Part shown: positions 16,668-64,000 of the stretch, piece after piece
How positions within the stretch are numbered: position 1 is the stretch's first letter
How the letters are laid out: every line of letters starts with the position of its first letter
Assembly: GCA_028023455.1 (NCBI GenBank)
Contig: JAQFVV010000010.1
Coordinates: 3,906,001 to 3,970,000 of the forward strand
From: Epiperipatus broadwayi
Lineage: Eukaryota > Animalia > Onychophora
Reading direction: 5' to 3'
DNA: 64,000 bases
Notes under the pieces: generated by a model
What the model saw: the letters and a program-made list of their open reading frames with translations, nothing else
Databases searched by the model: none
What the model was told of the DNA's origin: nothing
Program-made: the position numbers and the translations under genes

Positions 16668-16691
16668 GAAGTCCGGTAAGACAATACGCGT

Positions 16692-18407: not shown

Positions 18408-18549
18408 TATAAATGGAATTGTTACATTACCCTCTCTGCCCGATTACGTTTAAAATCCAACACACTCATTTTTATGCATAAAGTCCGATCCTAGTATAAC
18501 CTCATGGATTAATTCTTCTAAAATCAACAATACATGATCACATTCCCTA

Positions 18550-20195: not shown

Positions 20196-20215
20196 ATCCC
20201 GGACTCTGGCCCCCA
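20196..20215 (-). promoter_or_regulatory. Primer-binding site resembling tRNA-Pro
   Basis: Minus strand TGGGGGCCAGAGTCCGGGAT sits 2 nt after the LTR. The canonical Pro PBS is TGGGGGCTCGTCCGGGAT (7+9 nt match, with CAGA in place of TC). Confidence 0.75.
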
Positions 20216-20217
20216 AT

Positions 20218-29026: not shown

Positions 29027-29292
29027 TAAACAAAAGCAAAACTCCATAAAGTAGTGCCACCCTGTGCTAACCAGAGTAATCAATAGATGCCAGAAGGCTT
29101 GTGCATAAAATCCCTATCTAGTGCCTACTCATCCAATATCCCCAGACTAGTTTCTGGCTTGTGGCCATCATCAGTGGGGATATTGGATGAGTAGGCACTA
29201 GATAGGGATTTTATGCACAAGCCTTCTGGCATCTATTGATTACTCTGGTTAGCACAGGGTGGCACTACTGTATGGAGTTTTGCTTTTGTTTA
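29027..29292. repeat. Near-perfect hairpin / fold-back MITE: 118-bp arms, 30-bp loop
   Basis: 29027-29144 is the reverse complement of 29175-29292 with one mismatch (ccataaag vs ccatacag). Both ends are TA. Confidence 0.95.
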
Positions 29293-31363: not shown

Positions 31364-34300
31364 GTATGTTTAATTTGCAAAAAAAAAAAAAAAAAGCAAT
31401 GCAGATTTTTTAAAACTTTTTTCCAGCATTAAAAAGAAAGTAATAATTAATGATAATAATTATACGACTGAATGCAAGACAGGAGAAATGCAATTATAAT
31501 TTTATTTTTTTATGCATATTTATTAAATTTTTTATGTTTCTTTACAAGGCAGCATTGAGCGGATTTTAGATAATAGGATATGAATACTTCATTCAAACAA
31601 TATGATTTATTCTAATTTTTATTGGTAAATTGCTATTACTTAATATTCTTTAAACATGATTTATTCCAGCATTTAATAATCAGATTTGTATTATTAAGTA
31701 ATGAAGCTATAATGGAAACTTATGTAAAGTTATTAAGTATATAAAGTCAAGTAATGATTTTTTGTGTCTATATTAAGAAAAAATATGCTCATAAGTGCAA
31801 AATTTTCAAAAATGTGTTAATGTAAATTTTGCATTTGTCACTAAATATGATAGATATTGTTAAGATAGAGATCTCATTTATTTATTATGATTTTTAGTGG
31901 TGGACTTGAATAAAATTTATGTTTGGAAAAATAATAGTGATTACAGAATCTTTACACTTGAAAATTTCTGGATCTTGAGATGTTTGAGTATTAGTTAATT
32001 GACAAAGAAGTAAAGGCACAACATTTGTTAACAGCAGGATTGGGTAATAGTATATTTTATTAAAAAAATGTCTGAAGTTGTATCATTTTGATTGGGGGGG
32101 GGGGTAATAATGGGATATGAGTCATTCTCAAAATTGTAATTTTGAAGTTTTTTTTAATTATCATTAAATTTCTATTAAAATTTTTATTTTATTTGTAGAA
32201 ATGATATGCATACATATCTATTTTTATTTTATATAATTTTTAACTTTTTTTCATGATATTAATTTTAAGTGATTAAAGTTTATCTCAATTTCTCACATTT
32301 TTTGGATAGAATCTTATTTATTCTTTACCTAAATTAATACTTTTTTTATCTTTTATTAATAGCATTCTTTGGTTTCCAAATCTTTCAAACTGTTATATAA
32401 TTCTAAGCAATAAAAGTTTCCAAGAATATCATTGATTAATATTATTTAGGATATAAATATATTATATATTATTTATATATTATATATTATTTAGGATGTA
32501 AATAAATATATATTGTACCTAGGGAAAGAAAAGGCTAGTAATTAAAGCTAACAAGCTAAATAAGGTCAAGATAAATAAGGTTAATAAGGCTAAGCTAAAG
32601 CTCTAGCTAAGCTCAGGGTTTTTTTTCCTACTGTAATTTATGTGAGAACACAGAGAATTACAACAACAACAATAATAAACATTATAAAGTATAGCTAATA
32701 AATTTAAAAGGAGGAGAAACCTCAACTCACTCTTGCAAAACATTTAAAAGCTCTCAGTATTATAACACAAAGTAGCAATGATACAATTAATTGTTCTCTT
32801 ATAATAAAATCTCTTCCATTATCCCCACTCCAGCATATTCTTACATCTATAACTCCTTCTTCCTCTTCATATTGCTATGATCAGATCCACATTTAATAAA
32901 TAGTCAACTTGTATAAATCTTACTGATTTGTTATGCCATTTTGCCTTTTTTTGTCAATAGATGTAAGTTATTATTTATAGAATTATAGTATTATAATCTG
33001 AGGGTTCTTATATTATTTTAATATTAAGTTTTCAATATTGATTTCATGAATATGTTGTTGATAAATGAATGATATCCTAGCGATCAACAAGAGAACACAT
33101 ATACTTAATCTATAAGTCAATATCTACCTATTATTGAATAATAATAATGATAATTTAATAAATAATTTAACTAAGACAAAATTGCATCAAACTCTAAATT
33201 TGGAATAATATAATCATCTACTAGGAGAGCATACTGAATACCCAGAGTGGGAAAGGGATTTGATGTCCACTCAAAATATTCATTAACAACACAAAATACA
33301 TTTATTACATGGAAATAGACAATAATTGATTGTAAACATGGTCTTATTTTTATAAATTGCAGTTTTAAATTATAGTGATCAATAGAATAAATGAATAATA
33401 TTTTATTTAATGCACTCTTCATATCTGCAAAATAATTATTAGTTAAATAGTAACATTTAATTTATGTATTTGTAGTTTGAATAAATATTTGAAAAATATT
33501 TGCATTATAAAGTACATAATGTTTAGATTTCTGGATATTAATTTAGTGAATAACGAGAACATTATAAAGACACTACACCAGATTAAACAACAAAACATCA
33601 TTTATTTATAATGAACAAAATTTCATAAACATGAAATAACTTGGAAGGTCATTAAAGAATTAAAAAAAAAAATTTATAACAGTCTTATGTAATTGCTTAC
33701 AGGAGAATACTTTACAATTTCAAATTTCTCAAATTAACACATGACATGACTGAATTACATATCCATGACGGAGAATGGATTTAGGTGGACAAGCTCATTT
33801 GACCAATTAAAATTATTATAAGAAAATTTACCCTTCAAATAAAATACTTATTTTTCACTATTCTCAATTAATATTCTGCTCCATTCAAGTAATATAACTT
33901 TAATACACTACTAATAAATTTATGATACATGTTATATCTTTCGGCATACACACTCTAAATCATGCTATAATTTGATAATGAGCTTTACTAATTCATGCAT
34001 TATTTATTAACTATGGTCTTTAACTATCAGAGTTTTAATAAAACCTTCAATTATTTGCAGAGGTTACACATATCCACTCACACAATCTGTGCTATTTGTC
34101 TCAACAAGAGTAAAGCTAAATGATTTTAGATCTTACCAGTCCAGTGATAACTTGCATCTGGATGATGATCATTATGATGCACATTGTTTATTTTAGTCTA
34201 ATAATAAAACTTATAAATTTGAATAAATCATTATCAGTTTTATTTTATGTTTTGCTGGAAAACACAACAAAACAGATTATACATCAAAACTATCAAACCT

Positions 34301-35953
34301 ACAATTAGGGAGTTAAAAGTGTTCCTGAAGAAGATGATATACTTCAAATAACAAAACTTATTAATGACCAACTTACTAAATATTAATAACACCATACATG
34401 GTGGTAAATATATAATAACAAAGATATTTACGAGAGGAAAAGCTAATAAAGCACTAAACCTGTGATGGCATGAACCCAGAATAAGCACCTACTATCTGGG
34501 GGCAATAAAATTTGTTAGGACTTTGTCTCTAGACATATTTAATAAACGGGAATGAACCAACACACTACAAACATAAACATGAGAAAATAACACTCAAAAA
34601 AAATATCGCCAATATTGAAGGGAGTAACCCTCTATCTCCTAATAAAATTTCTAAATTATTTCAATATCAACACTAATGAGAGAGCCAAGCTCATCCTCCT
34701 AACCATCATGGCAGAAATAAAATTTGCATACCTTGGAAATACATAAAGATCAGATAATTTATATCACATATACTAGAGAGGAATTAATTCTAAACTCTTG
34801 ATAAATATAATACTAAATTAATGCATAAAAACGATAAACTAATAATAATTGTCAAATATGACTGAATAAAATGTAACCTTTAGAAATTAAAACAAACAAG
34901 CAATATACACCATTTTCATAAACATATAACATTCACTATAAATAACATTCTTATAATAAAGGGCATAGCAATACTATTTTAAATAACTTATACTAAGTCA
35001 TTATATAGCTTAGTATCATTAATGCTAACAATAATAATAAGTGAACCTCTATTAGGCATGTTAGATCGTACAATATAAAATATAAAACTCTTAATATTTA
35101 AAATAGCATACAATAATATATTTTATAATACATAACTTAAATTTAGTAAGCATAAATTTTACCAAAACTTTTTTTTTTTAAAAATAAAAAGAAAATATAC
35201 TCAAGTTCTTAATCTGACACAATTCCTGGTCTAACAATTCAACACATAAGGAGCTTCTATGTACGCTGATAATATAATTCAACAAATGCATTTGCATTAA
35301 TAGTTCTTTTTTAAGACTTCTACACACACACACACACAAAGAAAATATAAATAAATAAATGAATAGCTATTATTTCACTAATTATTACACATACACCTGA
35401 CAGAACAGTTCAACACTTTTATCACATTACACTGATTGCACTTTTTTTATGTAGATAATCATTTTTAATTTAGCATTTAATACATATTCTTCTTTTCCAA
35501 TTCAAGCAAGGTTTTCTCAGATACAACATGTAATATAGCGGTTTGCTCCTTAACACTTCTCTATCAAGCTAAGTAAATTTTTAAGTAATATTAATACAAC
35601 ATTTATCATATATATCTTTTTTATAATTAATCAATTTTTCTGTATGAAACATTTATATATAATATGGTTTATTCAAATATTTTCATATAGCTGTTTGGTT
35701 AAAATAACATTTTTTTTTGTTAATTATTTAACATTTTACCAAAGACAAAAATTCTATATCAATAATTCTCCAAAATTAGGAATATTAATTTATAAGTGAA
35801 AGTCTCAATAACTTTATGAATCAAAATTTTCCTTTTTAATCAGTATGATAAGCAACTATACAATTATTATGATAATAAAATTATTAGTGTTCACCACAAC
35901 AGTATTCTTTTTTTTATGAATAATTACTTCATTAAAGATTTTTATCTGAGACA

Positions 35954-36211
35954 AAAGACAATAAACATTTTAAAAGTTTCTGATGAATCATATTACCATA
36001 ACAAGTTATAGCAGATTACTAAAATTATTGTAGTCACTACCATAAACCTCTAATGAGTCTGCTTCAAAATAAGAAATTTCAAAAGACAATAAAGCATTTT
36101 AAAGGTTTCTGACAAATTATATTATCTTAGCAAGTTATAGCAGAAGATTAAAATCATTGTAGTTAACACTAAGATAAACTTCCAATATATCTGTTTCCAA
36201 ATAAGAAATTT
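35954..36211. repeat. Degenerate ~130-bp tandem duplication (also mirrored in the right arm)
   Basis: aaagacaataaa(g)cattttaaa.gtttctga...aagttatagcag...aaataagaaattt occurs twice. Confidence 0.75.
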
Positions 36212-39200
36212 AGACAGTTCATCATGAATAAAGTTTTTAACTGAATTAAGATAATTTAAACGGAATACCTGTAACACTTTGGCTCCAGAAAACAATGCTT
36301 TCATCATCTTTAAACAATTAATTGACAACTTGTTTATAAATTCTTCCTTTAACATTTGATTTAGATCCCCTGATTCGGATGAGAACCAGTATCTGATATA
36401 GTTTTACGCATTCATTTTTACTTTAGCAAAAAAAAAAAACTTATTAAAATTTCTTTTTTACTTTTGACTTTTCAAAATTTAAACTTCTTCTGCAATTCTT
36501 ATGGGCAGCAGGAAAATAAACTTCCCTTCATTTTTCTTCTTTCATTTTGTTGCCCCTGCCCTTTTTGATGCAATTCCCCAATGTCAATTGTCAATCATTC
36601 TGATTGACAAGAAACATTATTTCCTTTTGATTTCTCCACCTTTAAATTAACAGTTGATTGGTCTTTTATCTAAATCTAGATTTAGTAGTAAAATCATCAG
36701 ATGATCACATGATAGTCTAGGAATTTTCCATCAACCAAGTTATATTGTTAAATAAAATAATATAAAATAAATATTATCTAATTTTATTAACTTCTTTAAA
36801 TTCTTTTAAATTATATGAATGAATAATATTAGAGGTTCATTAATATTTAATTTAAGTTTTAATCAAATAAAATACTCTAAATATTAAATATTACAAAGAA
36901 ATATTTTCATTAACAAATAAAAGTTAAAATTATTATTGCAAACATGCTTACTCACACATTTAGAACTCATTCCATATCTTTTAACTATCAAATACAAAGT
37001 TTGAATAGCAATATTGATTATTATTTTAATCTCTTAAACTCAGTTTTAGACTGATTACTAATACAAATTATTTTAAATAAATATTCTATTTGAATTATAA
37101 TAATTATGTCTTAAATTTTAACATTAAATTAATTTAATCTGTATTAGGTTTAATTCAGGTACTAATGTAATTAGTCTAACTTGTATTAACTAATCTAAAC
37201 TTCTAATATGATAAGTTACATTTTAGATTTAATTTATTAACACATATCATAAATTTAAATATTTTTATTAGCATACAGTAAAGTAAAATATAATATGTCT
37301 ATTTATGACAAATATTTTAATCATTGACTATTTAGACTTGTCTATGCTTATATAATTTACAGAGGTAGTTAAACGTAATAAATGCTTCCTATAATTTTTT
37401 TTTTTTCATTAAATGTCAGCAATAACGAAATACTAGCTTTCTTGGCAAAGCCAGGATCACAATATATATCAGTAAAACATTGCCTGAAATTGTTGAATAT
37501 TGATGATCCAGGAAGATTGATGTTATATTGCTATGTTGATGACAGGAATTTTATAGTAAAAAGATTCTTTGTATCTCATAATTTGCTGATAAATCTTTGG
37601 ATGAGAAATTTTTTTCCATGAATGATTTTATTATGGGACAAAATATCTCACATAGCCATTTGTAGAGCAAAGATTTGATGATTCAAAAATTTTTTTTTAT
37701 TACTAAAATAATGCTCTACAAGTTCAAAATTTTAAATTGCTCATAAACTCAGATTTTTTAAATTAACAATGATTCAATTTTAAATCTCCAAACAAAAAGA
37801 ATAAAGCATTTCAGATAATTTGGCTTCTTTTCTTAACTCCTATAAGTATTTTTTTTTTGCATTTTATTTTGTAAGACCGTAGTTTTATAATTTACATTAA
37901 ATTTCATCCACATATTTACGAAAATCATATTCAATACATTTTTAGATTTCACAAATCAGAATTGCACTTTTAATTTGTGCATGTTTCATAAAATTGTCAA
38001 ACCACATATTTCTTTTACATTTTTTAGATATAGAATCTTTAATTTGAAATTATGGTACTTACATCTTGGATTTGCTGTAATGAAAATAGATGTACAAACA
38101 ATGTCTATATAAGGACCGAATTAAACACATTTACAATAAAAAGGAAAATAATTACTTTTTTAAAGATAATATTCTGATCAGAATATAGTTGTAACTCAAA
38201 ATGTTGATTCAGCTACTAATTTTATGATTTAAAGTATATTGTGATGTCATGATAGAATGCTGGGATGACTAATCGATCATCTGGAGAAAGTAAAGTGTAC
38301 ATGTGATTTAATGTTCAGCTTTAATTTTTGTCGAGTGAATTTTTTGAACATCTTATCCAGTGAAATGATTAAAATTTGGGAACTGCTTGCTACCGAGGAC
38401 AATGCATTCTACTAAAGTTTGTACATGTAGCTTGATATCTCTAGAAAAATTCAAAATTCTGTAAAAGTGATGATTGCAAGCTACTGGAATATAAGCATTT
38501 TCATGTAAATCATAGGTATACTTTCGTTTCCATTTTACAATACAAAAATACCTCAGTCCACCCGAGTGATTGCAAGAAACAATTTTTCGTTTTTCTTTTT
38601 TTATTGGAATAAATGTATATTGCTATCATTTTTCGCAAAAAATAAAAACGTAAATATTTGTTCATGTATTTCCGGTAAATAAAGTTATAGGTCGCCATTT
38701 TGTACAAAATAAGATTAGTTTTAGTCATTTTTGCAAATAATTCTTTGCTTCAAAACATAAATACGTGTTTGTATATTTGCACTAACTAAAGTTATAGTCA
38801 TCATTTATGAAAATTGGTGGATTAAATCTGTCAGAAGACCTGTGCAGATATTATTTTATAAGATGCAAGGTTAGAAGATTATCGCTGGACTATTATGTAT
38901 GTGATATTTCACAGTAAGTCTAATACATAAGTGTCGAAATGTTTTTTTCTCAAATATTTAAGATTAACTTTAACTTTTTCATAAATAAGTCCCCTTCTTT
39001 TTAGTAAAAGGCTCTATTACTTAAATTATTGTATGATTTGGGAAAAAATGAGAAGTATTAGTTTTGATATCTATATTTTATTGTAGCTGAATTCATTAGT
39101 CCATAATTATCTATAAGAATCATAATTTTTCTCTACTTTGAAATTCATTTATTACATACTTTTTATTTCAAGTTTTTTTTTTTGTATTGATTTGTATCAT

Positions 39201-39400
39201 TTTGGAAGTCAAAAATAAATAAAACTAATATGTTAATAATGTATTTTTAGTGTATATTTATTAAAAATCATAATAGTCAAAAATAAATAAATCTAATATG
39301 TTAATAATGTATTTTTATATTTATTAAAAATCCTAACACAAATATTATTAAATGAAATTTCAATTAACTAACTTTCATTTATTTGATTTTCCCCTCTCTC

Positions 39401-39447
39401 CACACACACACACACACACACGCACGCACACACACACACACACACAC
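39401..39447. repeat. (CA)n microsatellite, mirrored as (TG)n at ~58101-58152
   Basis: Read directly from the sequence. Confidence 0.95.
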
Positions 39448-39523
39448 TGTTTTCTGTTTAATCACGTACATTATATCAATTTTTGAATATTAATGAACCA
39501 AATACAAATAGCATTATTTGTTG

Positions 39524-40637
39524 TATAATAACAGGGGAACATATATTTGATAAACCAGATATCGATGAATACTTAAAGGCTCTATATTCTCATGAACTCA
39601 TTAACACGGTCAAATATACTTCTTTTTTTCCTGCTAGAGGGTTCGTTTCGATTGAATATTTCAATAAAGAACAAAAAGATAAAGCTGAAAACATAATTAA
39701 GCAAATTCAAAATAAAAAAATTTACTATGTTATAAAAGATCCCAATCCATTGGTCTATGGAAGAATACTGCATACACCTCCAAGTTTCAATGTTGAATTT
39801 TTTAAAATCCAACTATTGGATTATGCTGAGATAATAAATTTGGAAAGAGAAATGACGCCGGGCACAGCCTTCCAAATTCCGTCAAACTCATGGACAGTAG
39901 TACTTAAATTAAAGAAAGGGGTAACGAAAGAACAGATACCACATAAAATAACAAAAGATCAAATGCCCATTTCCATAATAATAAAGGGTAGATCACCATT
40001 GTGTTTTAAATGTAATCGAGTGGGGCATATTGCAGCAGGCTGTAACACTGCTAACTGCATGAAGTGTAACAAATTTGACCGATTAAATCACTTATGTAAT
40101 GTATCATCATCAATTAAGATATGGGCTAATATAGTTAGTAACACAGGAGACGAGCATTTATTGTATGAAGAAGAAATTGATAAATTAAAAAATATGGACA
40201 TATTAGATGAAGTTGAATTGTTACCAGGCCAAAATGATCTATTGCAGGTTGGAAATGTCACAGGTATTGATAGTCTTATAGATTCATTTGATGAGAATAA
40301 CACAGACTCGCAAATGGAAAATGAAAACGAAGACAGGGTTATGATAACACAATCGGTAGAACTTATCAACCAACAAGTAAATGATAATGAAGATAGTATC
40401 AAAACAGAAGAACTTAGCAACAAGCAAATAAATGGTAATGAGGATAGTATCAAAACACTCAAAAGAAATACACATCAAAAGATTAATAAAGTTACAAAAG
40501 ATAATAATGGTGATAATCAAATAATGTTGAATATTAATTTGGCAGAATTAAACAATGACTCCTATGATAAGAAAGATGATGAATTAAAAACTAAGGGAAA
40601 AGATGAGGATGTGGGGTGTAATATGCTAATAAAATGA
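39524..40637 (+). CDS. LINE ORF1 (Gag-like, CCHC zinc knuckle), 5'-truncated
   Basis: GRILHTPP..L..Y.EI..LERE...IPHKI...IIIKGRSPLCFKCNRVGHIAAGC resembles Tx1/L1 ORF1. The ORF track start at 39483 is a TTG in non-LINE flank. Confidence 0.8.
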
Positions 40638-40655
40638 TTACTAAATTATCAAGAT

Positions 40656-42592
40656 ATGAAGAATTCACTAAATATAATATCTATGAATGTTAGAGGAATG
40701 AATGCAGGTGATAAAGTGATTAAAATTATAGACTACATTGCTTCCCAAAAATATGACATTATAATCTTATCAGAAACAAAGATTAGTAGTAACACACCAA
40801 TTTGGATTACTGAAAGACTTGCAAAGGCAAATGTGTTTCTGTACAGAATGAATACAAAATCAGCACAGGGAGTTGCATTACTAATAAATATGAGATCAAA
40901 TATAAGAAACATACAAATAATCATGTTACAAATAAATTTTATAGTGATTTCCTTTACCTTTTGTGATAGGCTTCATTATCTAATTGCAGTATACTCGATT
41001 AGTAAAGATAAAGATATTCCTAAGCTAATTCATGGTATACAACATAAGTTAATGCAGAAGCCGGGCATTGTTGTGGTTGGAGGTGACTTCAATTGCTCCT
41101 ACCGGGATATTCCTAAAAGTCTGGAAAACAAACTAGAAGCTCTTGCAGTATATCCATTGGAAATGAAATATGGTAAGGATGCCTACACATTTTTTAACAG
41201 CAGGTATATGTCACTAATAGATTTGTTCTTTGTGTCAAATGGTAAAGTGAAAGACTCATTCATTGAAACTTCTCTAGTAGGCTTTTCTGATCACCTAAGA
41301 ATACTATTGGAGATAAAAAATTATGATGCAATAAAAAATAAGGCCTATGTCTTTTCTATTAAAAAGAACATTATGAGTCAGATAAACTTTACAGTTGATC
41401 AAATGTCTAACATTTTGATAGTATCAAACTACTATACAAGCCAATCAAAGCTACCTCCATGTATTGCATGGAATAAAATGAAAAAAATTATCTCAAGCCT
41501 ATGCCGTAATAACACAAATAATATGTTAACGCAAAACCAAATGAGAAATAGAATTATTGAAATCAATAAAATACTAATTACTATATCTGGCCTCAGAGAA
41601 AGTAATGATTTAGTGAAGAAGCTACAACTGGAATATAATGATATATATAAAAGAATGCAGGAAGAAACATATACACGAAGAATAAGAAAATTAATCCCAG
41701 ATCTTAACAAAATAGTGAAGCCAACAATTAACTATGCGAAAATATACATCCCTCACACCAATGGTATCCCATTGATGACAGCCGAAGACTCTGTGATATC
41801 GGGTGATGAGGTAGATCAATATATGGTTGTGAGATTAAAAGAAATCATGGGCGAACGAAGGATTGAGAGTGAACAATTCTCCATTCAATTAAGGCAAACT
41901 ATGAATGGTTACATCTCGCATCAGGAGGTCTTGCTTGAAATAAAGAGATTAAAGTTGCAAACAGTATTAGCAAATGACGAAATCCCAGCATCAGTGTATA
42001 AGCAAATTGGTTATTTTCTGATTGGCCCTTTATTAAAATTTTATAATCAAATGTGCTCAGAGATTTTTGATTGGCCATATATTAACAACAGAATAATCTT
42101 CAGCATTAAAAAAGAAAAGAATATGAAAATGCCCCACTTTGAAGAACTAAGAAATATAACAATTGAGGATATTGATGCTAAAATCATTGCTAGAATATTA
42201 CAAAAAAATTATTTAGAAATGTCAGTAACAAGATATCTTCGGCGCATCATGCAGTAAAGGGCAAGAGAGCAGTAAATGCAGCTATTAAAATCCAAGAAGC
42301 TATTAAGCATGCCAGGCACGCTTAATCTAGCACAGTATTTCGCATTGCAAATTGATTTTAAATCTGCCTTTGACCTCGTGAACTGGTCTTATCTATTTAA
42401 TACCCTAAAGGAGCTTATAGCGGATGATCCATTCTTATTGAATGCAATAAAAAATTACATTATGAATAATAGAATTTCTTATAAAAATTTCATGAGAAGA
42501 TCAGAGTTTTTTGCCCCAGATAGAGGAATTCCACAAGGATCACCTTTGGCAGCACTGTTGTTTGCAATTTATGTAGATCCCATGAAAAGAAA
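40656..42592 (+). pseudogene. LINE ORF2 (APE endonuclease + RT N-terminal half), frameshifted near 42200-42330 and truncated at the apex
   Basis: SMNVRG, ILSETK, GGDFN, IDLFFVS, FSDH; RNITIEDIDAKIIARIL, IDFKSAFDLVNWSYL, GIPQGSPLAALLF. Confidence 0.9.
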
Positions 42593-42683
42593 GGGGGGGT
42601 GAACTCAGTGTCCCGCAGATAGTTTTTTCCTGGGCGGGCCCGGGGGAGGCCGGGGGTATATATACGAGGGTCCAGGGTTACTA
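42593..42683. other. 91-bp unique GC-rich spacer at the palindrome apex
   Basis: About 56 of 91 bases are G/C, against a strongly AT-rich background. The inverted arms end at 42592 and resume at 42684. Confidence 0.9.
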
Positions 42684-42922
42684 TTTCTTTTATCATGGGA
42701 TCTACATAAATTGCAAACAACAGTGCTGCCAAAGGTGATCCTTGCGGAATTCCTCTATCTGGGGCAAAAAACTCTGATCTTCTCATGAAATTTTTATAAG
42801 AAATTCTATTATTCATAATGTAATTTTTTATTGCATTCAATAAGAATGGATCATCCGCTATAAGCTCCTTTAGGGTATTAAATAGATAAGACCAGTTCAC
42901 GAGGTCAAAGGCAGATTTAAAA

Positions 42923-44623: not shown

Positions 44624-44625
44624 AT

Positions 44626-51039: not shown

Positions 51040-53400
51040 TTTATTGGAAATGGCAGGTCAGTCAATGAAAGGATAATGCATGGTGTTGGATTGTTGTAAG
51101 TTCTAATTTAGTATCTTCTAACCTTTGGAAATCCTTATTGTATCAATGAAAGACTAGTGATTTTAAAGTTCAACTTGCACCATGGCACTAATGATCATTT
51201 TATTAGTGTTCATACTCCAATCTTTGATTCAGAGAAGGAAAGCTGTTATTTCTTCTTGGATAGGATTATCACAGCAATACCATTAAAAAAAAATTTTTTT
51301 TCTTAGAAATTTTAATGCATGCATTAGTACAAAAGTTATTGGAAATAATAGTAACCATTAAAAAAAAATTTTTTTTAGAAATTTTAATGCATGCATTAGT
51401 ACAAAAGTTATTGGAAATAATAGTATCGGTGCCATAAATTCAAATCACTTGTTATTAAACTTTTGCACTATATAGATTGATTAGACTATATATAGGAAAA
51501 AAATTGTTAACATGGATATATCCATGGTCTAAACAATGGCATTTAATAGATTACATTATACTTATCCCCAAGAAATTGATTTTCATTCTTAAAAAAAATA
51601 TATTCTTCGCACTAAATTTCAACACCAGGGCTGTCATATTAACCAAACATGGAATTCTCTTATATAATATGTTATGAATACGAGTAAATGCACATAATAA
51701 CCATTTCTTATACTGTTTAAATCCATTTTTGGGTTCAATAAAATGAAGAATCATAACTAGATTTCTGACAATGATCTTATTTGAAGAAAACATGGCATTA
51801 TCTGCTTGATAAAATAATAGATTAAATGTGGAATAGTGGAAGATACAGACATTCACCGATAATGATCATTTTGGGGTTTCTTTTGATGCACTGAAGGTGA
51901 CGTAAGAACTTGAGAAAGGGTATTACAATTCCTATCAAATCCAGAAATGGTAATCATATGATATTTTAAACAAGTGTAAAGAGCATTTTGATCATTTTCT
52001 GAATAATGAGATGTACTGAGATGATAACTTTTAACGATACATTCATTTTATTTCCTCATTTACATTTGGACAAAGATATTCAACTAAGTAAAATCAAAAC
52101 AGCTAAATTGAAAGACTGCAGGTCCTGAAGAAATAGATGAAGTTGTAAAATATGGCAATAATATTTTAGCATCAAAATATTGGGATTTTTTAGAAATATA
52201 CGGATTCATGAAGTTGTCCCATCTGATCTTAAAGATGCTTTTATTTTTCTAATTTTTAAAAACAATGGAAATATACAAGATTGCAGTAATTATTGTGGAT
52301 ATCATTATCTACTACAGAATAGGTACTTTCAATAATTTTGTTGAATAAACTGCTTCTGTTCATATTAGCAGACTCTACATGATTTTAGATAACCAATAAA
52401 CATGAATATATATGAGGCAAATGCAAAAAAAGTGACGATTTAGTTAAAGCATTTGATTCTGTTAATAAGATAGATCTATGGCATAGTTATCCATCAAAAT
52501 TTATTCATAATATAGTTTTTATATGAAATGAAAATTGGTGTTAAACATGCTCCAACATTGTTTTCAATTTTCATATAGCAATGGTCTTTGGAATTTTTTA
52601 TAAAAGGCTTAAATAAATAGGGATCAAGATATAATTATAGATATGATAGTGGAATTTTTAATTTAAATTGATTTAAAACAATAACAATAACTTCTTGAAT
52701 TCTGGATTGATACTATACTGATGATGTGCTATTTTTTCCAACAACAAAAGATGATCTCCAAAATATACTTAATGTTTTGAATGCAGCAAATATAAAGTTT
52801 GGTTTATCAATTATTATTCAAAAATCAGGAATAATGGAAGTCTTCAGCAACTTTTAACTTGAATAGTTATTAACTTGAAAATGTGAAGCCAACATAAATT
52901 CTTGGTAGCTTTTTAAATACAAAGATAGACATAGATATTGAGGTGCAGTGCAGATTCCAAGGTGATATTGCTGTTTTTAACAAGTTAAAAGATAGAAGAT
53001 TTCATCATAGGAAAATAACTATTGCAACCAAGTTGTACAGAAAACAATTATTTTATCTAATTTATTATATAGAAGTAAAATGTAGTGCAAAAAAGTTTCA
53101 TTTAAGAATGTCCCATAAAATTTTTAAAATACAATGGCAAGATCATAAAAGCAATCATTATGTTCTTCAACTTGATGTGATACTATGAAGTCCATTATTG
53201 TAAAATCACACCTTTGTTAGATTAAATATTTAAATGTATGATTAATGCAAGACTTCCTTTATAAAAAGGTGTTTTATAGTGAACTTAAGCATGGTACACC
53301 CTGTTTATGTTATACGGATTATTTCAAAAATATTCTAAAGTACAATGTCAATTGTTTCCATTGGGAAGATAGGCAGAAAATAGAATACATTATTGGTGAG
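51040..53400 (+). mobile_element. Old decayed RTE-like LINE (APE + RT), antisense within the right arm
   Basis: TWIYPWSKQWHLIDYII (~51510-51560), LVKAFDSVN (~52440-52468), GVKHAPTLF (~52537-52563) and YTDDVL (~52712-52730). Confidence 0.8.
51279..51424. repeat. ~73-bp tandem duplication (x2)
   Basis: accattaaaaaaaaattttttt...gttattggaaataatagta occurs twice. Confidence 0.9.
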
Positions 53401-56400
53401 CTACAACTAGATATGTTTTGTTAACATAGTTCAGAAAGAGGTTTTCTGCTGAAGAAATTATAAGATAACATTGTAAAATATCAAGTAAACAAAATAATAG
53501 AAAAGTATGTTCCATATGTGGATGAATTTGTATTTCAGCGAATGATTTTTGTAATCATCTCATTTCTAGGTATTTTCCCTCTCCCTCTTTTTTTCCTTTT
53601 TCTTTTTTTTCTGAGTTAGGACAGCTATACTTGTTTATGAATGGCTGTTTATTATTACAGCATTCTAAATAAGCATTTATCATTTTTTTCCTTCCTTCAT
53701 TAATATAAAAATTAAATAACAATATTATTAATTAATAAGTTTAATATCTATTGCATGTACATTTGCAGTATATTCTACATATATACACATTTTATATCAG
53801 TAAAGCATCTTTACATCAATCATTTACTCTTTTCCCATCTCGCTTTCTTATTGTAAAAATTGTTGTCAGTTTGTCTAGCATTTTTTTCTCCCCTTTCATT
53901 TAATGCCCATAATATTATGTGTAGTTCAGCATTTAAAGTTTCTCTTTTTATTTATTTATTTATTATTATTTTGTAGTAAAACCATGATAATGTAGTAAAT
54001 GTTTTTTTAAAAAACAATGCTATTTACTAAACAAAATAAAAAAAGTAAAAATCCCAAATTTAAATAGAGAAGTCAAAGAAAAAAAATCAAAATTAAAAGA
54101 ATGATGGTCATATACGCTTATAAATATACTTGTATTTAAAATATATACATATTTTATTTTTACTATATTGTCATTATTATTACTTTTAAAATATAACTTT
54201 ATTTTGGATAATGAGGGTAATTGGTTTCCCAAAACTCATTATAAAACAAAAATCTGTATAGAAAAAAAGCAATCTTAATGGTTTCTCATGGTAAAAATTT
54301 AAATTGTTATTATAGATTCAAAACATAACATAAAATTTGATCCAATAAAAAGGTTTAAAACTGAAAAAGTGATAATTCATGAAAAAATAATTTATTAGAC
54401 ATTATTAATTAAAACTTCCACTAATCTACGAGTAAATATAGTATATAATTTGTTGATTTTTAAGCACAAAACCATTACTATGAAAGTTTTTTTATTTTAA
54501 ATAATGTTATAGTAACAGTCCCATTTTGAAATCATGTTGTCAAAACTGATATCCTGTTGAATTATAATTTGTTAAAATAAAATATATAAAAATAAAAATA
54601 ACTGTAACTATTAGAATTAGAAGTTACACTTTCAATTCTTTTTGGTGTACTGCATGTGTGTGTATATATATATAATCAATGTTTTGTTTTGTTTTTTGTA
54701 ATTATCTTATGAGTGAAATTCTTAATTTTTTTTTATCTCATTCTGTTCTAAAATGACTGTCTTTACGAAAATGAAGTCAAATTAAAAATTAAATTACCAA
54801 ATGTCATGTACAATACCCATTTATAAATTCATTTTTGATGCAGCTGATTCTTATTTGTAATCAAATTTTATTATATGCAATGATTATTTAACTTTATGAT
54901 TAAAGGCATTCAGATATTAACAATTGTAACATTTAATAATAACTAGGTAAATAAATCATATTTTAGCTACTCAACACATTTTTCAATGTACGTTTAGTGC
55001 TTCATTACTGTGTGTGACCATTTTTTGTTTTTGTTTTTTTACGTAATGATTAAAACCTTTTTTTCCCCCAACAAACTTGTTTATGATTATGAAAAAGACA
55101 TTTTAACTCATGAATATATTTTTCAATTTATTTTTAATGTTCTTCAATACTTTATCTGATGACCTTTTTTTGTTACTTGGGTAATAATTAAAATTACTTA
55201 TTATGATGAGAATAATTGTAATATAAACAATTTAGATGGTAGCAAGTGTATTTTATGAGAACATTTAATAAAAATTAGATAAATAAATCTTATTATAGCT
55301 AATATACACATTTTCCAATTTATTTTTAATAATTAACCCTTTGAATGTCAAGATCAGATCATAGTTAAAAACTTGCATATAAAATCATATAGTTATTTTA
55401 CACATACATTAGCATAATAAGATGCCATAATATCTTACAAACAATTATAGCAAGCACTATGTATACTCCAATCAACATTGGAAATCAATATATAGTCTAT
55501 AGGACATAATATTTATCTAGTAGCATGTACTATGAATTATAATTTTTTGATTTGATCACATTTCTGTAGCATTTAACAATATATTATCTAAATATTTATG
55601 TTTCGACTTTTTTTTTTTTTAGTATTTCATTAGTACCCAGAAAATTTTCTGCCTTTTTTTAAAATCTCTTACCTTCTACTAAAATTATTGCAATGCTTTG
55701 TTCTGTTGCTATTATAAATTTTAAAAGATATTCCCCTAGCACTTTAATTCATATTTTTCAGCAATTAAAAAATTGGTAGAATCCGCTAAAAATAATTGAT
55801 TCCATCAGAGCCTTACTACATTCATTGTAGCTCACAATGAAATATATGTATTATATAAGAGTAATCCATTATAGGACCCCAGCCTAGAACAAAGTTACCA
55901 TCCACAACAATCATTTAAACAGGAAAATATAATAGAAATATCAAAAATGTAAATAAAAAATACATACAAAATTAATTGCTGTACATAATGTACAATTCAA
56001 TTTTAATTAAAAATAAAATAAAACTTTTAAAAGCATAAAGTGAAATGTAAACAAATTTAACCTCAACCATTGCATGGATTTTTTCAAAAATGAATATATT
56101 ATTTGCCTTTTTTTTTTTTAACCTATCATTTCCTTTTGATCCTGTTGCCTGTGCAAATTTTTAATTCATCCTCATTTTTAAAAATAGCATAGATCATTCA
56201 TTTAGCATATTGTATTCAAAACTCAAATTACTTTCTATTTTATTTATTTCTCTTTTAGAAATAATCATATTTTCCATTCAATACTGATCATATTTGTACA
56301 TGCATGAACACAAATTTTTTTTAAATAATAAAGATGAAACAAGAAACAAATTGTAGAAGAAAAACTAAATGAAATATGACAAAGATTAAGGCAAAAATGA

Positions 56401-58032
56401 AAGTGCTGTGCACATGCTCATTGTAACATTTGCTATTTCAGCCAATAGGAATTGTCATTTTAGTTATTCTATGTTTAGCATTTAAATTTCTGACATTTTT
56501 ACTGTATTTTCACTTCAAAATTATTTTTTGACAACAATGAATAATAAGATTTTAAATTCTGCATTTATGGTTATAAATGATTAGAATATGTGCCCAGAAG
56601 AATACTTTTTTAACTATATTTTCACTAGCATGCTAAAGATAAAACTAGATAAGCAAACTAAATTGATAATTAAATCTTTTGTGATAAAAATGTTTGCTAA
56701 TCTCATATTAGCTGCATGTATTTGCATTTGTTCTACAATACTTAATTTAGATATTAAAAAAAAGCCTCATTGCACAAAATTGTTCACTATAAGCCTTCAT
56801 ACTATATAACAGTTCAGTTATACTTCAAAAATAGTTTTTTAATAAATAATAACTGCTTATTTATAATTTTTAATAGGCTGCTCTTCTATAGTTTTTATAT
56901 AACTATTATTTATTTCTCCAGTTCCTTGAAAAACAAGATGAAAGTTCATTATACTACATTTTAAATCAAATCATGTAAATATAAATTCTTTTATAACACT
57001 TAATATATGTACATATATATTTTAATCAAAAACATATTAATTTTTAACTGCTTTCATTTCTTACTCCGATTCATTTTTTTTTCTCTTTATCTTGCCATTC
57101 CATTCTTTCATATCATTATCCATTTCTTTTAGTCTTTCACTATTATTTTTTTTCTGCCAATTTCTAAAATGTTTTGTAATTAGAACATAAATTTGAAAAA
57201 TTATTATGATGTTAATTCAAAACAATTTTCTCATTTATTCTCAAAACTTTGTTTTACTATAACCATTGCTACCTTTTCCTAGTGTGAAAAATACATATCT
57301 TCTTAATATTATATATAATCTTTTCACCTCACTACAAATACATTTGCAGTTTCCCTTCTCTTTTTTGACATTTCTTACTTCACAGACTCTTTATTGTAAC
57401 GCTCCGATGAGCAATATAGAAACTAATATATGCAGATTAAAAATACTTGGAAAAGTCCTCTTAATTCTTTTCAACATATATTTTAAATATTAAAATAATA
57501 ATAAGCAAAATAAATTAATAGTTTAGAAGACAATAATAATAATAAAGTAAATAAGTAGTAATCATATGGTAAATTGTTTGAGAGTTCGTGGGACATTCAA
57601 TCATTCTATTGCCAGATCAAGAATTTAGCAGCTCCATTCATTTAACCTAGTTTTTATTTTTTTAATTACGTTAGTGTCACTGAGAAATAATTATGGAAAC
57701 TCCAGCTTCACATTCGAGAATGTACACTGCAATGAACAATTACATTAAGTAAATAAACTAATATAATAATATGATAGACTGATAATTAATATGAAAATAA
57801 AAAGTATAAATAAATTAATAAAATTTAAATAAAATCTCTAAATAATTTTAAAATGATTTGATATTAGTAATAATATAAAAAGATAATGTGTTTAATTATC
57901 ATTTACTAAATAATCATCCCAATATCTTTTTTATTAACCTATATAATAGAATTTAACACATTTATAGAAAATGGTATAAATAAATAAAAAATTTTGCTTA
58001 ACACAATGTTCATGATAAATAAATTTCAGTTA

Positions 58033-58120
58033 AATGCTATTTGTATTTGGTTCATTAATATTCAAAAATTGATATAATGTACGTGATTAAACAGAAAACA
58101 ATGTGTGTGTGTGTGCGTGC

Positions 58121-58153
<33 letters not shown>

Positions 58154-61100
58154 GAGAGAGAGAGGGGAAAATCAAATAAATGAAAGTTAGTTAATTGAAA
58201 TTTCATTTAATAATATTTGTGTTAGGATTTTTAATAAATATAAAAATACATTATTAACATATTAGATTTATTTATTTTTGACTATTATGATTTTTAATAA
58301 ATATACACTAAAAATACATTATTAACATATTAGTTTAATTTATTTTTGACTTCCAAAATGATACAAATCAATACAAAAAAAAAAACTTGAAATAAAAAGT
58401 ATGTAATAAATGAATTTCAAAGTAGAGAAAAATTATGATTATATAGATAATTATGGACTAATGAATTCAGCTACAATAAAATATAGATATCAAAACTAAT
58501 ACTTCTCATTTTTTCCCAAATCATACAATAATTTAAGTAATAGAGCCTTTTACTAAAAAGAAGGGGACTTATTTATGAAAAAGTTAAAGTTAATCTTAAA
58601 TATTTGAGAAAAAAACATTTCGACACTTACGTATTAGACTTACTGTGAAATATCACATACATAATAGTCCAGCGATAATCTTCTAACCTTGCATCTTATA
58701 AAATAATATCTGCACAGGTCTTCTGACAGATTTAATCCACCAATTTTCATAAATGATGACTATAACTTTAGTTAGTACAAATATACAAACACGTATTTAT
58801 GTTTTGAAGCAAAGAATTATTTGCAAAAATGACTAAAACTAATCTTATTTTGTACAAAATGGCGACCTATAACTTTATTTACCGGAAATACATGAACAAA
58901 TATTTACGTTTTTTATTTTTTGCGAAAAATGATAGCAATATACATTTATTCCAATAAAAAAAGAAAAACGAAAAATTGTTTCTTGCAATCACTCGGGTGG
59001 ACTGAGGTATTTTTTGTATTGTAAAATGGAAACGAAAGTATACCTATGATTTACATGAAAATGCTTATATTCCAGTAGCTTGCAATCATCACTTTTACAG
59101 AATTTTGAATTTTTCTAGAGATATCAAGCTACATGTACAAACTTTAGTAGAATGCATTGTCCTCGGTAGCAAGCAGTTCCCAAATTTTAATCATTTCACT
59201 GGATAAGATGTTCAAAAAATTCACTCGACAAAAATTAAAGCTGAACATTAAATCACATATACACTTTACTCTCTCCAGATGATCGATTAGTCATCCCAGC
59301 ATTCTATCATGACATCACAATATACTTTAAATCATAAAATTAGTAGCTGAATCAACATTTTGAGTTACAACTATATTCTGATCGGAATATTATCTTAAAA
59401 AAAGTAATTATTTTCCTTTTTATTGTAAATGTGTTTAATTCGGTCCTTATATAGACATTGTTTGTACATCTATTTTCATTACAGCAAATCCAAGATGTAA
59501 GTACCATAATTTCAAATTAAAGATTCTATATCTAAAAAATGTAAAAGAAATATGTGGTTTGACAATTTTATGAAACATGCACAAATTAAAAGTGCAATTC
59601 TGCATTGTGAAATCTAAAAATGTATTGAATATGATTTTCGTAAATATGTGGATGAAATTTAATGTAAATTATAAAACTACGGTCTTACAAAATAAAATGC
59701 AAAAAAAAAATACTTATAGGAGTTAAGAAAAGAAGCCAAATTATCTGAAATGCTTTATTCTTTTTGTTTGGAGATTTAAAATTGAATCATTGTTAATTTT
59801 AAAAATCTGAGTTTATGAGCAATTTAAAATTTTGAACTTGTAGAGCATTATTTTAGTAATAAAAAAAATTTTTTGAATCATCAAATCTTTGCTCTACAAA
59901 TGGCTATGTGAGATATTTTGTCCCATAATAAAATCATTCATGGAAAAAAATTTCTCATCCAAAGATTTATCAGCAAATTATGAGATACAAAGAATCTTTT
60001 TACTATAAAATTCCTGTCATCAACATAGCAATATAACATCAATCTTCCTGGATCATCAATATTCAACAATTTCAGGCAATGTTTTACTGATATATATTGT
60101 GACCCTGGCTTTGCCAAGAAAGCTAGTATTTCGTTATTGCTGACATTTAATGAAAAAAAAAAAATTATAAGAAGCATTTATTACGTTTAACTACCTCTGT
60201 AAATTATATAAGCATAGACAAGTCTAAATAGTCAATGATTAAAATATTTGTCATAAATAGACATATTATATTTTACTTTACTGTATGCTAATAAAAATAT
60301 TTAAATTTATGATATGTGTTAATAAATTAAATCTAAAATGTAACTTATCATATTAGAAGTTTAGATTAGTTAATACAAGTTAGACTAATTACATTAGTAC
60401 CTGAATTAAACCTAATACAGATTAAATTAATTTAATGTTAAAATTTAAGACATAATTATTATAATTCAAATAGAATATTTATTTAAAATAATTTGTATTA
60501 GTAATCAGTCTAAAACTGAGTTTAAGAGATTAAAATAATAATCAATATTGCTATTCAAACTTTGTATTTGATAGTTAAAAGATATGGAATGAGTTCTAAA
60601 TGTGTGAGTAAGCATGTTTGCAATAATAATTTTAACTTTTATTTGTTAATGAAAATATTTCTTTGTAATATTTAATATTTAGAGTATTTTATTTGATTAA
60701 AACTTAAATTAAATATTAATGAACCTCTAATATTATTCATTCATATAATTTAAAAGAATTTAAAGAAGTTAATAAAATTAGATAATATTTATTTTATATT
60801 ATTTTATTTAACAATATAACTTGGTTGATGGGAAATTCCTAGACTATCATGTGATCATCTGATGATTTTACTACTAAATCTAGATTTAGATAAAAGACCA
60901 ATCAACTGTTAATTTAAAGGTGGAGAAATCAAAAGGAAATAATGTTTCTTGTCAATCAGAATGATTGACAATTGACATTGGGGAATTGCATCAAAAAGGG
61001 CAGGGGCAACAAAATGAAAGAAGAAAAATGAAGGGAAGTTTATTTTCCTGCTGCCCATAAGAATTGCAGAAGAAGTTTAAATTTTGAAAAGTCAAAAGTA

Positions 61101-64000
61101 AAAAAGAAATTTTAATAAGTTTTTTTTTTTTTGCTAAAGTAAAAATGAATGCGTAAAACTATATCAGATACTGGTTCTCATCCGAATCAGGGGATCTAAA
61201 TCAAATGTTAAAGGAAGAATTTATAAACAAGTTGTCAATTAATTGTTTAAAGATGATGAAAGCATTGTTTTCTGGAGCCAAAGTGTTACAGGTATTCCGT
61301 TTAAATTATCTTAATTCAGTTAAAAACTTTATTCATGATGAACTGTCTAAATTTCTTATTTGGAAACAGATATATTGGAAGTTTATCTTAGTGTTAACTA
61401 CAATGATTTTAATCTTCTGCTATAACTTGCTAAGATAATATAATTTGTCAGAAATCTTTAAAATGCTTTATTGTCTTTTGAAATTTCTTATTTTGAAGCA
61501 GACTCATTAGAGGTTTATGGTAGTAACTACAATAATTTTAGTAATCTGCTATAACTTGTTATGGTAATATGATTCATCAGAAACTTTTAAAATGTTTATT
61601 GTCTTTTGTCTCAGATAAAAATCTTTAATGAAGTAATTATTCATAAAAAAAGAATACTGTTGTGGTGAACACTAATAATTTTATTATCATAATAATTGTA
61701 TAGTTGCTTATCATACTGATTAAAAAGGAAATTATTGAGACTTTCACTTATAAATTAATATTCCTAATTTTGGAGAATTATTGATATAGAATTTTTGTCT
61801 TTGGTAAAATGTTAAATAATTAACAAAAAAAAATGTTATTTTAACCAAACAGCTATATGAAAATATTTGAATAAACCATATTATATATAAATGTTTCATA
61901 CAGAAAAATTGATTAATTATAAAAAAGATATATATGATAAATGTTGTATTAATATTACTTAAAAATTTACTTAGCTTGATAGAGAAGTGTTAAGGAGCAA
62001 ACCGCTATATTACATGTTGTATCTGAGAAAACCTTGCTTGAATTGGAAAAGAAGAATATGTATTAAATGCTAAATTAAAAATGATTATCTACATAAAAAA
62101 AGTGCAATCAGTGTAATGTGATAAAAGTGTTGAACTGTTCTGTCAGGTGTATGTGTAATAATTCGTGAAATAATAGCTATTCATTTATTTATTTATATTT
62201 TCTTTGTGTGTGTGTGTGTGTAGAAGTCTTAAAAAAGAACTATTAATGCAAATGCATTTGTTGAATTATATTATCAGCGTACATAGAAGCTCCTTATGTG
62301 TTGAATTGTTAGACCAGGAATTGTGCCAGATTAAGAACTTGAGTATATTTTCTTTTTATTTTTAAAAAAAAAAAGTTTTGGTAAAATTTATGCTTACTAA
62401 ATTTAAGTTATGTATTATAAAATATATTATTGTATGCTATTTTAAATATTAAGAGTTTTATATTTTATATTGTACGATCTAACATGCCTAATAGAGGTTC
62501 ACTTATTATTATTGTTAGCATTAATGATACTAAGCTATATAATGACTTAGTATAAGTTATTTAAAATAGTATTGCTATGCCCTTTATTATAAGAATGTTA
62601 TTTATAGTGAATGTTATATGTTTATGAAAATGGTGTATATTGCTTGTTTGTTTTAATTTCTAAAGGTTACATTTTATTCAGTCATATTTGACAATTATTA
62701 TTAGTTTATCGTTTTTATGCATTAATTTAGTATTATATTTATCAAGAGTTTAGAATTAATTCCTCTCTAGTATATGTGATATAAATTATCTGATCTTTGT
62801 GCATTTCCAAGGTATGCAAATTTTATTTCTGCCATGATGGTTAGGAGGATGAGCTTGGCTCTCTCATTAGTGTTGATATTGAAATAATTTAGAAATTTTA
62901 TTAGGAGATAGAGGGTTACTCTCTTCAATATTGGCGATATTTTTTTTGAGTGTTATTTTCTCATGTTTATGTTTGTAGTGTGTTGGTTCATTCCCGTTTA
63001 TTAAATATGTCTAGAGACAAAGTCCTAACAAATTTTATTGCTCCCAGATAGTAGGTGCTTATTCTGGGTTCATGCCATCACAGGTTTAGTGCTTTATTAG
63101 CTTTTCCTCTCGTAAATATCTTTGTTATTATATATTTACCACCATGTATGGTGTTATTAATATTTAGTATGTTGGTCATTAATAAGTTTTGTTATTTGAA
63201 GTGTATCATCTTCTTCAGGAACACTTTTAACTCCCTAATTGTAGGTTTGATAGTTTTGATGTATAATCTGTTTTGTTGTGTTTTCCAGCAAAACATAAAA
63301 TAAAACTGATAATGATTTATTCAAATTTATAAGTTTTATTATTAGACTAAAATAAACAATGTGCATCATAATGATCATCATCCAGATGCAAGTTATCACT
63401 GGACTGGTAAGATCTAAATCATTTAGCTTTACTCGTTGAGACAAATAGCACAGATTGTATGAGTGGATATGTGTAACCTCTGCAAATAATTGAAGGTTTT
63501 AGTAAAACTCTGATAGTTAAAGACCATAGTTAATAAATAATGCATGAATTAGTAAAGCTCATTATCAAATTATAGCATGATTTAGAGTGTGTATGCCGAA
63601 AGATATAACATGTATCATAAATTTATTAGTAGTGTATTAAAGTTATATTACTTGAATGGAGCAGAATATTAATTGAGAATAGTGAAAAATAAGTATTTTA
63701 TTTGAAGGGTAAATTTTCTTATAATAATTTTAATTGGTCAAATGAGCTTGTCCACCTAAATCCATTCTCCGTCATGGATATGTAATTCAGTCATGTCATG
63801 TGTTAATTTGAGAAATTTGAAATTGTAAAGTATTCTCCTGTAAGCAATTACATAAGACTGTTATAAATTTTTTTTTTTAATTCTTTAATGACCTTCCAAG
63901 CTATTTCATGTTTATGAAATTTTATTCATTATAAATAAATGATGTTTTGTTGTTTAATCTGGTGTAGTGTCTTTATAATGTTCTCGTTATTCACTAAATT
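58033..64000. repeat. Outer right arm of the inverted duplication (mirror of 33540-39515), continuing past the window end
   Basis: Reverse-complement identity of ~99%, with scattered substitutions and small indels (e.g. ~19 bp missing near 61731 relative to ~35811-35830). Confidence 0.97.

Follow-up and report, generated by a model that had tools for sequence, protein, structure and literature searches.

We conclude that the large palindrome at 33540-64000 of the window (the whole 64-kb stretch of Epiperipatus broadwayi DNA that was analysed) is very probably an artefact of genome assembly, in which one locus was written twice, once for each haplotype, and the two versions were joined head-to-head inside a LINE. 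An inverted duplication with a short unique spacer is present in the assembled sequence, and the mirrored pairs described in an earlier note on this DNA were recovered at the same coordinates by self-BLAST and a repeat search. The outer arms (33540-39515 versus 64000-58033, inverted) are 98.9% identical over 5989 aligned columns, with 32 mismatches and 14 gap openings, and the inner arms (39524-42592 versus 45754-42684, inverted) are 99.1% identical over 3075 columns, with 17 mismatches and 7 gap openings. Divergence is equal in the two pairs (0.54% in the outer arms and 0.55% in the inner arms), and, judged on sequence, the mirror match is far beyond chance. Because position 33540 pairs with position 64000, which is the end of the window, the arm lengths are minimum values. 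The mirror of a hairpin element further to the left would lie 4241 nt to the right of position 64000, and the palindrome probably continues outside the window. For this hairpin, the matches from a permissive Rfam scan were all sub-threshold and of the generic miRNA-hairpin type, with no hammerhead model among them, and a scan of the whole window at the Rfam gathering threshold gave zero matches. The motif CUGAUGA lies in the loop of the hairpin on the minus strand.

Table 1. Features of the palindromic locus, in window coordinates.
Feature	Coordinates	Strand	Description
Hairpin element, 273 nt	29022..29299		Near-perfect; self-match 29027-29299 versus 29292-29022, 92%
Left outer arm A	33540..39515	+	Flank, single-copy for the most part, that contains small repeats; read as haplotype L
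Filler ATTTGTTG, 8 bp	39516..39523	+	Between flank A and the 5'-truncated LINE in the left arm; from junction comparison
Left LINE copy	39524..42592	+	Extends from within ORF1, through the APE endonuclease, to the RT domain, where it stops
Apex spacer, 89 nt	42593..42681		63% GC; three G runs of 5-7
Right LINE copy, portion common to the left arm	42682..45754	-	ORF2 of 566 aa with APE domain
LINE 5' portion, N-terminal part of ORF1	45755..46311	-	Right arm only
Segment C, about 11.7 kb	46312..58032		Right arm only; no recognisable gene
Right outer arm A'	58033..64000	-	Read as haplotype R of the same locus; ends at the window edge

The two pairs of arms had been interpreted as a single asymmetric palindrome that turns within a reverse transcriptase (RT) gene, and the domain structure agrees with this. 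The apex is exactly where the Pfam RVT_1 match halts, at position 139 of the 205 in the model. Both LINE copies break off there in mid-RT, without 3' ends, and the turn is symmetric, with the two arms reaching one LINE position to within about 7 nt. Pfam searches identified an ORF1 with a weak CCHC knuckle and an ORF2 with an APE endonuclease in the LINE, and the left copy, which carries several frame-breaking indels, matched Exo_endo_phos as well as RVT_1. The sequence from 45755 to 58032 (12,278 bp) is confined to the right arm, where an open reading frame at 45583-46311 crosses the breakpoint. The LINE 5' UTR and its end fall somewhere at the left edge of segment C, the open reading frames of which had no Pfam match. 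A search for proteins homologous to ORF2 found none at E <= 1e-20, an Atlas search returned only generic APE/RT clusters, and no contigs encoding ORF2 or two small open reading frames of A' are on record, either in other assemblies or past the window end.

This anatomy makes it scarcely conceivable that the structure is a product of retrotransposition, that is, an inverted LINE pair formed via twin priming or with a Penelope-type head-to-head geometry. First, LINE 3' ends are always supplied by target-primed reverse transcription, but they are missing from both copies here. Second, the LINE 5' ends point outward, and the mirror extends into a minimum of 6 kb (probably above 10 kb) of flank that lies outside the LINE. 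Third, twin priming joins non-overlapping segments, whereas these arms overlap by 3 kb. Insertion by either route is contradicted by the mid-RT ends and the mirrored flanks, and with the flanks mirrored, target-site duplications that bracket only 39524-45754 are impossible.

Might the palindrome instead be a real chromosomal feature? A break in the LINE, followed by snap-back or by copying of the breakage-fusion-bridge type, could have duplicated at least 13 kb in inverted orientation in the germline; this explanation also requires a later divergence of ~0.55% and the gain or loss of 12.3 kb in one arm. The symmetry of the turn to within about 7 nt is what true fold-backs show, and the equal divergence of the outer and inner arms also favours such an origin. 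The locus resembles biological fold-back and breakage-fusion-bridge palindromes in its inverted duplication, short spacer and symmetric turn, but differs from them in that its junction lacks read support, its copy number is not doubled and its spacer has a base composition foreign to the genome. A long palindrome whose spacer is short is unstable, and persistence through 0.5% divergence is accordingly unlikely. Palindromes that are maintained, such as the human Y-chromosome amplicons, keep their near-identity through gene conversion, whereas the arms at this locus diverge by 0.55%. We therefore regard as improbable a real germline fold-back with arms of at least 13 kb and 26 kb around a spacer of under 100 nt, stably inherited through 0.5% divergence. 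If true, it would imply an unusual tolerance of long palindromes in this species.

The apex spacer stands apart from the rest of the window. Its GC content compares with a window mean of 28% (s.d. 8.4%) and is the highest of any 89-nt stretch in the 64 kb, matched by none of the 63,662 other positions; a filler so foreign to the genome argues against a real fold-back. The indels that break ORF2 cluster within the final 400 nt before the spacer, and this clustering, together with the extreme GC content, is consistent with unpolished sequence from a single read. A self-complementary hairpin adapter was also considered as the source of the spacer, and is not favoured, because folding revealed no hairpin structure (z = 0.45). 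Read support was assessed using eight 31-mers sampled across 42578-42698, each overlapping the spacer by at least 16 nt. None of the eight was found in any indexed run, as is awkward for a real fold-back; in the neighbourhood (38800-42760), a fraction of 0.60-0.66 of the sampled words was present in runs X1-X4, all of sample S1. If the assembled spacer is error-ridden, a true apex of other sequence would likewise yield no word matches. Among the Logan contigs listed, a minority of all pieces and loose ends, none covers the spacer or changes strand there, which again argues against a real fold-back, with the reservation that rare variants are lost from Logan contigs and one crossing the apex at low depth could have escaped notice. 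A lack of independent reads across the apex had been named beforehand as a sign of haplotype fusion by the assembler, and, as far as contigs can show, the words and listed contigs agree with it. The spacer probably represents junk introduced by a chimeric read that folded back.

A second such sign, the continuation of sequence from the apex into an intact RT, was seen from both arms. The left-side contig (from run X6) reaches 42585 and the right-side contigs (from X2 and X4) reach 42681. The loose ends of the X6 contig and of the X2 and X4 contigs are mutually reverse-complementary and spell one in-frame RT continuation containing DPMIKEIETLINGIYLP. In total, contigs of three runs depart from the two arms at the apex and enter one and the same intact RT. 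The ~100 other LINE copies may be the source of all of these continuations.

Both arm versions of flank A occur in sample S1. In its single-copy portion, the contigs of X1 or X2 carry the other letter at 37389, 37456, 37955/6, 38780 and 39116/7, and every one of these variants is an inter-arm difference with the letter of the right arm. Different alleles were chosen in the same 803-nt contig in X1 and X2, which represent one sample. Position 37456 has about 16-18x of additional depth next to the main contig, and the shared sequence lies at about 31-34x. Two sequences account in full for the sample variation at this locus, which is a further point against the presence of a real fold-back.

The depth of coverage leads in the same direction. 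Contigs of unique flank A have a word depth of 25-45x (X1 + X2; mean about 34x), and baseline contigs, which were attached through chance matches of 20-24 nt and probably come from unrelated loci, have 27-42x, mostly about 32x. The ratio of flank A to baseline is about 1.0-1.1, so that arm copy number is not doubled; because the baseline consists of incidental contigs and not of a chosen single-copy control, this test is moderately strong. Because flank A has the depth of the baseline, about one copy of A is present rather than two. The depth fits two haplotypes of a locus that is single-copy, and not a duplication: the summed depth of the arms lies near the baseline and not at 2x or 1.5x, which argues against a real fold-back. 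The earlier note had likewise looked to depth as a sign of haplotype fusion, and in the Logan contigs the arms summed correspond to the single-copy baseline. Of the two alternatives that it left standing, head-to-head fusion of haplotypes by the assembler is upheld by the absent spacer words, the run-on contigs and the depth, and a real chromosomal fold-back is disfavoured by the same observations.

The LINE itself is present in many copies. Its word depth in Logan contigs is 2,500-9,000x, compared with the baseline of about 32x. It has roughly 100 or more copies, and the family is abundant and probably recently active. At every inter-arm LINE difference among those listed, the letter of the right arm is the majority in the reads; the right copy is essentially the majority sequence of the family, and each of the 17 substitutions that separate the copies is a change private to the left one. 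Such one-sidedness calls for an extra assumption, because symmetric divergence of alleles would produce it with a probability of 2 x 0.5^17. The two LINE copies might be different insertions, or the right copy might have been polished or converted towards the family consensus. In multi-copy LINE contigs of X4 and X6, the loose ends show the upstream sequence of the right arm preceding the position that corresponds to 39524.

How, then, might the assembled structure have arisen? Under the assembly-artefact explanation, we infer that the contig path was most likely turned within the RT by a single chimeric long read that folded back, or by an equivalent strand error in the graph. The path would have led in along haplotype L (flank A and the truncated LINE) and out along haplotype R (the LINE, segment C and A'). 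The GC-rich spacer would be unpolished junk covered by the fold-back read only, and the arm divergence of ~0.55% would represent ordinary heterozygosity. A high-copy LINE is a typical site for such an assembler U-turn. The 12.3-kb asymmetry would be a heterozygous structural variant with an inferred polarity: haplotype L would carry either a deletion or a 5'-truncated LINE insertion of its own at the boundary between A and C. The earlier note had correctly assigned the 12.3 kb to the right arm only, but its description of this sequence as lost from the left arm is not established; insertion of a 5'-truncated LINE in one haplotype fits at least as well.

Artefacts of this kind have been reported. 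Among ONT gDNA reads, about 0.55-0.6% are fold-back artefacts, which can entangle the graph in an assembly (Heinz, Meyerson and Li, PMC12338684), and palindromic reads arising after whole-genome amplification have been described as well (Pacasus, bioRxiv 10.1101/173872, PMC6218980). The present locus resembles fold-back artefact reads in that a molecule would have been read forward and then as its reverse complement from nearly the same position, with unrelated sequence optionally between the two. It differs from them in that the arms are not identical and are distinguished by the 12.3-kb variant; the fold-back read would therefore supply the turn only, and the arms would come from other reads of the two haplotypes.

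At the level of whole assemblies, the palindromes in the first assembly of Adineta vaga were not retrieved at chromosome level and were ascribed to erroneous scaffolding of phased haplotypes (PMC8494291). As in the AV13 assembly of that species (compared with AV20), the arms described here differ at the level of heterozygosity, represent the haplotypes of one locus placed head-to-head, and lack independent support (PMC8494291). This precedent raises the alternative that two unpurged haplotigs, each ending in the LINE, were set in opposite orientation during scaffolding and the gap between them was filled with spurious sequence, and the evidence for haplotype duplication (spacer words, contigs, depth and variants) applies equally to it. 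We nevertheless consider a scaffolding error highly improbable. There is no N anywhere in the 64-kb window, and two separate contigs would have had to end within about 7 nt of one LINE position; the near-identical stop positions in the two arms instead suggest that a single molecule or read folded back. Unlike the case of A. vaga, the join is gapless, lies inside a high-copy LINE and contains a junk spacer, which argues for a fold-back read rather than scaffolding.

We are thus highly confident that this palindrome is not a real feature of the genome, and the finding serves mainly to flag the quality of the assembly. At least 30 kb of a chromosome-scale assembly would be falsely duplicated in inversion; since the mirror is cut off by the window end, the full length is probably much greater. 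The 3' half of the LINE and its true downstream flank would be missing from the locus or misplaced. Gene counts, synteny, structural-variant calls and any claims regarding palindromes in this genome would be affected. At the same time, the locus documents a real 12.3-kb heterozygous structural variant beside a member of an abundant LINE family.

How might an inverted duplication of this size have arisen? The palindrome is present in the assembled sequence, as the earlier note had observed, and a comparison of the window with itself reproduced its coordinates, which are listed in the table together with the neighbouring features. The outer match, in which 33540 is paired to 64000, is cut by the window end, so the arms have at least the lengths given. 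The two blocks of the left arm are separated by an 8-bp filler, and the points in the right arm that match this boundary lie 12,278 bp apart (45755-58032). Not a single N base occurs in the 64-kb window. We consider it most likely that this palindrome is not real biology. Of the two explanations offered in the earlier note, a chromosomal fold-back or two haplotypes joined head to head by the assembler, it is the second that holds.

Features of the palindrome and its surroundings (window coordinates)
Feature	Position	Strand	Size and identity	Remarks
Inverted repeat pair	3-253 vs 5126-5373		251 bp, 89% identical	Encloses about 4.9 kb
APE-endonuclease fragment	ORF 4286-4618			Between the 251-bp repeats
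Other LINE debris	near 4.3 kb			
Imperfect palindrome	11714-11934		228 bp, 81% identical	
Ty3/gypsy LTR retrotransposon	12753-21883	minus		RT, RNase H, integrase SH3 domain
Ty3/gypsy LTRs	12753-14411 and 20216-21883		1.66 kb, 97.3% identical	
Tandem duplication	14782-14975		95 nt, perfect	Just past the left Ty3/gypsy LTR
Near-perfect hairpin	29022-29299		273 nt	CUGAUGA in loop, minus strand
Outer blocks (flank A and its mirror)	33540-39515 vs 64000-58033		98.9% identity, 5989 columns	32 mismatches, 14 gap openings
(CA)n microsatellite	39401-39447 and 58102-58153			Lies ~70 bp before the A|LINE junction
8-bp filler	39516-39523		8 bp	ATTTGTTG; separates both left-arm blocks
Inner blocks (LINE)	39524-42592 vs 45754-42684		99.1% identity, 3075 columns	17 mismatches, 7 gap openings
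Apex spacer	42593-42681		89 nt	

A non-LTR retrotransposon makes up the inner blocks; its ORF1 has a weak CCHC knuckle and its ORF2 an APE-type endonuclease. The RVT_1 match breaks off precisely at the turn, having reached model position 139 of 205; therefore, the palindrome turns inside the reverse transcriptase, as had been proposed from the sequence. The LINE positions at which the two arms end are no more than about 7 nt apart. Several indels of 1-2 nt relative to the right arm interrupt ORF2 in the final 400 nt of the left arm ahead of the spacer, and at three such sites the multi-copy LINE contigs, all or most of them, disagree with the left arm. The word depth of the LINE is 2,500-9,000x as against about 32x, and its copy number is roughly 100 or more. 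The majority sequence of the family, which is that of the right arm (42682-46311), appears to contain a frameshift inside the reverse transcriptase near 42946-42965; either the change of frame is tolerated or most copies stem from a master that was already defective. Twin priming and a Penelope-type head-to-head insertion are ruled out by the anatomy, since neither LINE copy has a 3′ end and the mirroring extends over at least 6 kb of unique flank.

The spacer at the apex is 63% GC, compared with a window mean of 28% (sd 8.4%) for 89-nt stretches, and at none of the 63,662 other 89-nt positions in the window is the value as high. The spacer has three runs of 5-7 G, forms no hairpin structure on folding, and does not occur a second time within the window. 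Of the 31-mers sampled from 38800-42760, a fraction of 0.60-0.66 was present in X1-X4, four sequencing runs that all come from sample S1. For eight words sampled from 42578-42698, where every 31-mer shares at least 16 nt with the spacer, the index listed no run whatsoever. The stretch 36800-42760 was compared with Logan contigs from X1, X2, X4 and a further run, X6. An X6 contig arriving at 42585 from the left continues as TAAAAGAAATAGAGACACTAATAAATGGAA, and X2 and X4 contigs arriving at 42681 from the right are preceded by the reverse complement of AGACACTAATAAATGGAATTTACCTGCC. These loose ends are one identical continuation, in-frame …FAIYVDPMIKEIETLINGIYLP…, in which the reverse transcriptase carries on. 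Arms that run on into an intact reverse transcriptase, which the earlier note had named as a sign of haplotype fusion, are thus seen in the contigs, possibly derived from other LINE copies. Among the joints listed for 36800-42760, and the minority of pieces and loose ends listed with them, no joint changes strand and no piece covers the spacer; contigs also lose rare forms. We regard a real germline fold-back as improbable; that the assembled spacer may be an error-ridden form of the true one, and that the contig listing is incomplete, speak in its favour.

Depth in flank A bears on the same question. In its unique parts, contig word depth is 25-45x (for example, 31.4, 34.1 and 26.9 in X1; 30.8, 25.2 and 24.7 in X2). 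The single-copy alternative letters in A (37389, 37456, 37955/6, 38780, 39116/7) are all inter-arm differences and carry the right-arm letter. X1 and X2, from one sample, picked different alleles in the same 803-nt contig, as is expected when bubbles of two equally deep alleles pop at random. At 37456, an additional depth of about 16-18x stands next to a main contig of about 31x. Contigs with chance 20-24-nt matches only, which probably come from unrelated loci, have depths of 27-42x, mostly about 32x (15 of 21 such joints listed). Summed, both arm sequences reach about 1.0-1.1 times the typical depth, where 2x would be expected of a homozygous duplication and 1.5x of a heterozygous one; this fits a single-copy heterozygous locus. 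By depth, the case that A is such a locus is moderately strong, the baseline being incidental.

Substitution divergence is equal in the flank (32/5976, 0.54%) and the LINE (17/3069, 0.55%). All 17 substitutions, of which 11 are GC-to-AT and 4 fall at CpG, appear to belong to the left LINE copy: among the rows listed, the read majority has the right-arm letter at every differing LINE site, two of the 17 (39546, 42310) lying outside these rows. The only departures of the right copy from the family majority are one at 41918, which the left copy shares, and a single T within the T run at 45655. A 17:0 split does not come from symmetrically diverging alleles, which leaves two ways out: polishing or gene conversion drew the right copy to the family consensus, or each arm's LINE is an insertion of its own. 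If the latter is true, the haplotype read in the left arm would carry an extra 5′-truncated LINE at the boundary between A and C (the right-arm-only segment, 46312-58032), with C and the full-length LINE downstream in both haplotypes. Untemplated filler of 8 bp at the 5′ junction is ordinary for 5′-truncated LINE insertions. Alternatively, the left-arm haplotype would carry a 12.3-kb deletion with one end in ORF1; one assembly error then suffices, but the 17:0 asymmetry is unexplained. Either one is a heterozygous structural variant and is compatible with an assembly artefact. Between the arms, the (CA)n microsatellite differs by 8-bp and 2-bp indels and three substitutions; because contigs break there, any read support of the filler junction is hidden.

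Transposable elements abound in the region, small hairpin elements among them, and no host gene was recognised there. The pol of the Ty3/gypsy element is split over several ORFs. The 251-bp repeat pair may represent a further retroelement in inverted arrangement or the TIRs of a transposon, and the 228-bp palindrome is probably another small fold-back element. The expected mirror position of the 273-nt hairpin lies 4241 nt past the window end, and with a hairpin there the mirror would span at least 29.0-68.5 kb in window coordinates; a hammerhead in this hairpin found no Rfam match, the only matches being sub-threshold and to generic miRNA hairpins.

About 0.55-0.6% of ONT genomic reads are fold-back artefacts, many of which have unrelated sequence between the halves, and assembly-graph tangles have been ascribed to them (PMC12338684). 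Whole-genome amplification is another source of palindromic reads (Pacasus, bioRxiv 10.1101/173872, PMC6218980). We infer that a chimeric read of this kind, which runs forward, passes through junk and then returns as the reverse complement from nearly where it had stopped, led the assembly into a U-turn within a repeat too difficult for the assembler to resolve. The contig path would have drawn its two arms from two haplotype versions of the upstream flank, each arm acquiring its own haplotype's letters through consensus and polishing, and the spacer, covered by the chimeric read alone, would have remained noise. In Adineta vaga, palindromes of the first assembly were absent from the chromosome-level assembly and were ascribed to erroneous scaffolding of phased haplotypes (PMC8494291). 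For the present palindrome, a pure scaffolding join instead of a chimeric read is less likely, since no gap is present and both arms end at nearly the same LINE base. What the finding does flag is a large, probably false inverted duplication within an assembly of chromosome scale.
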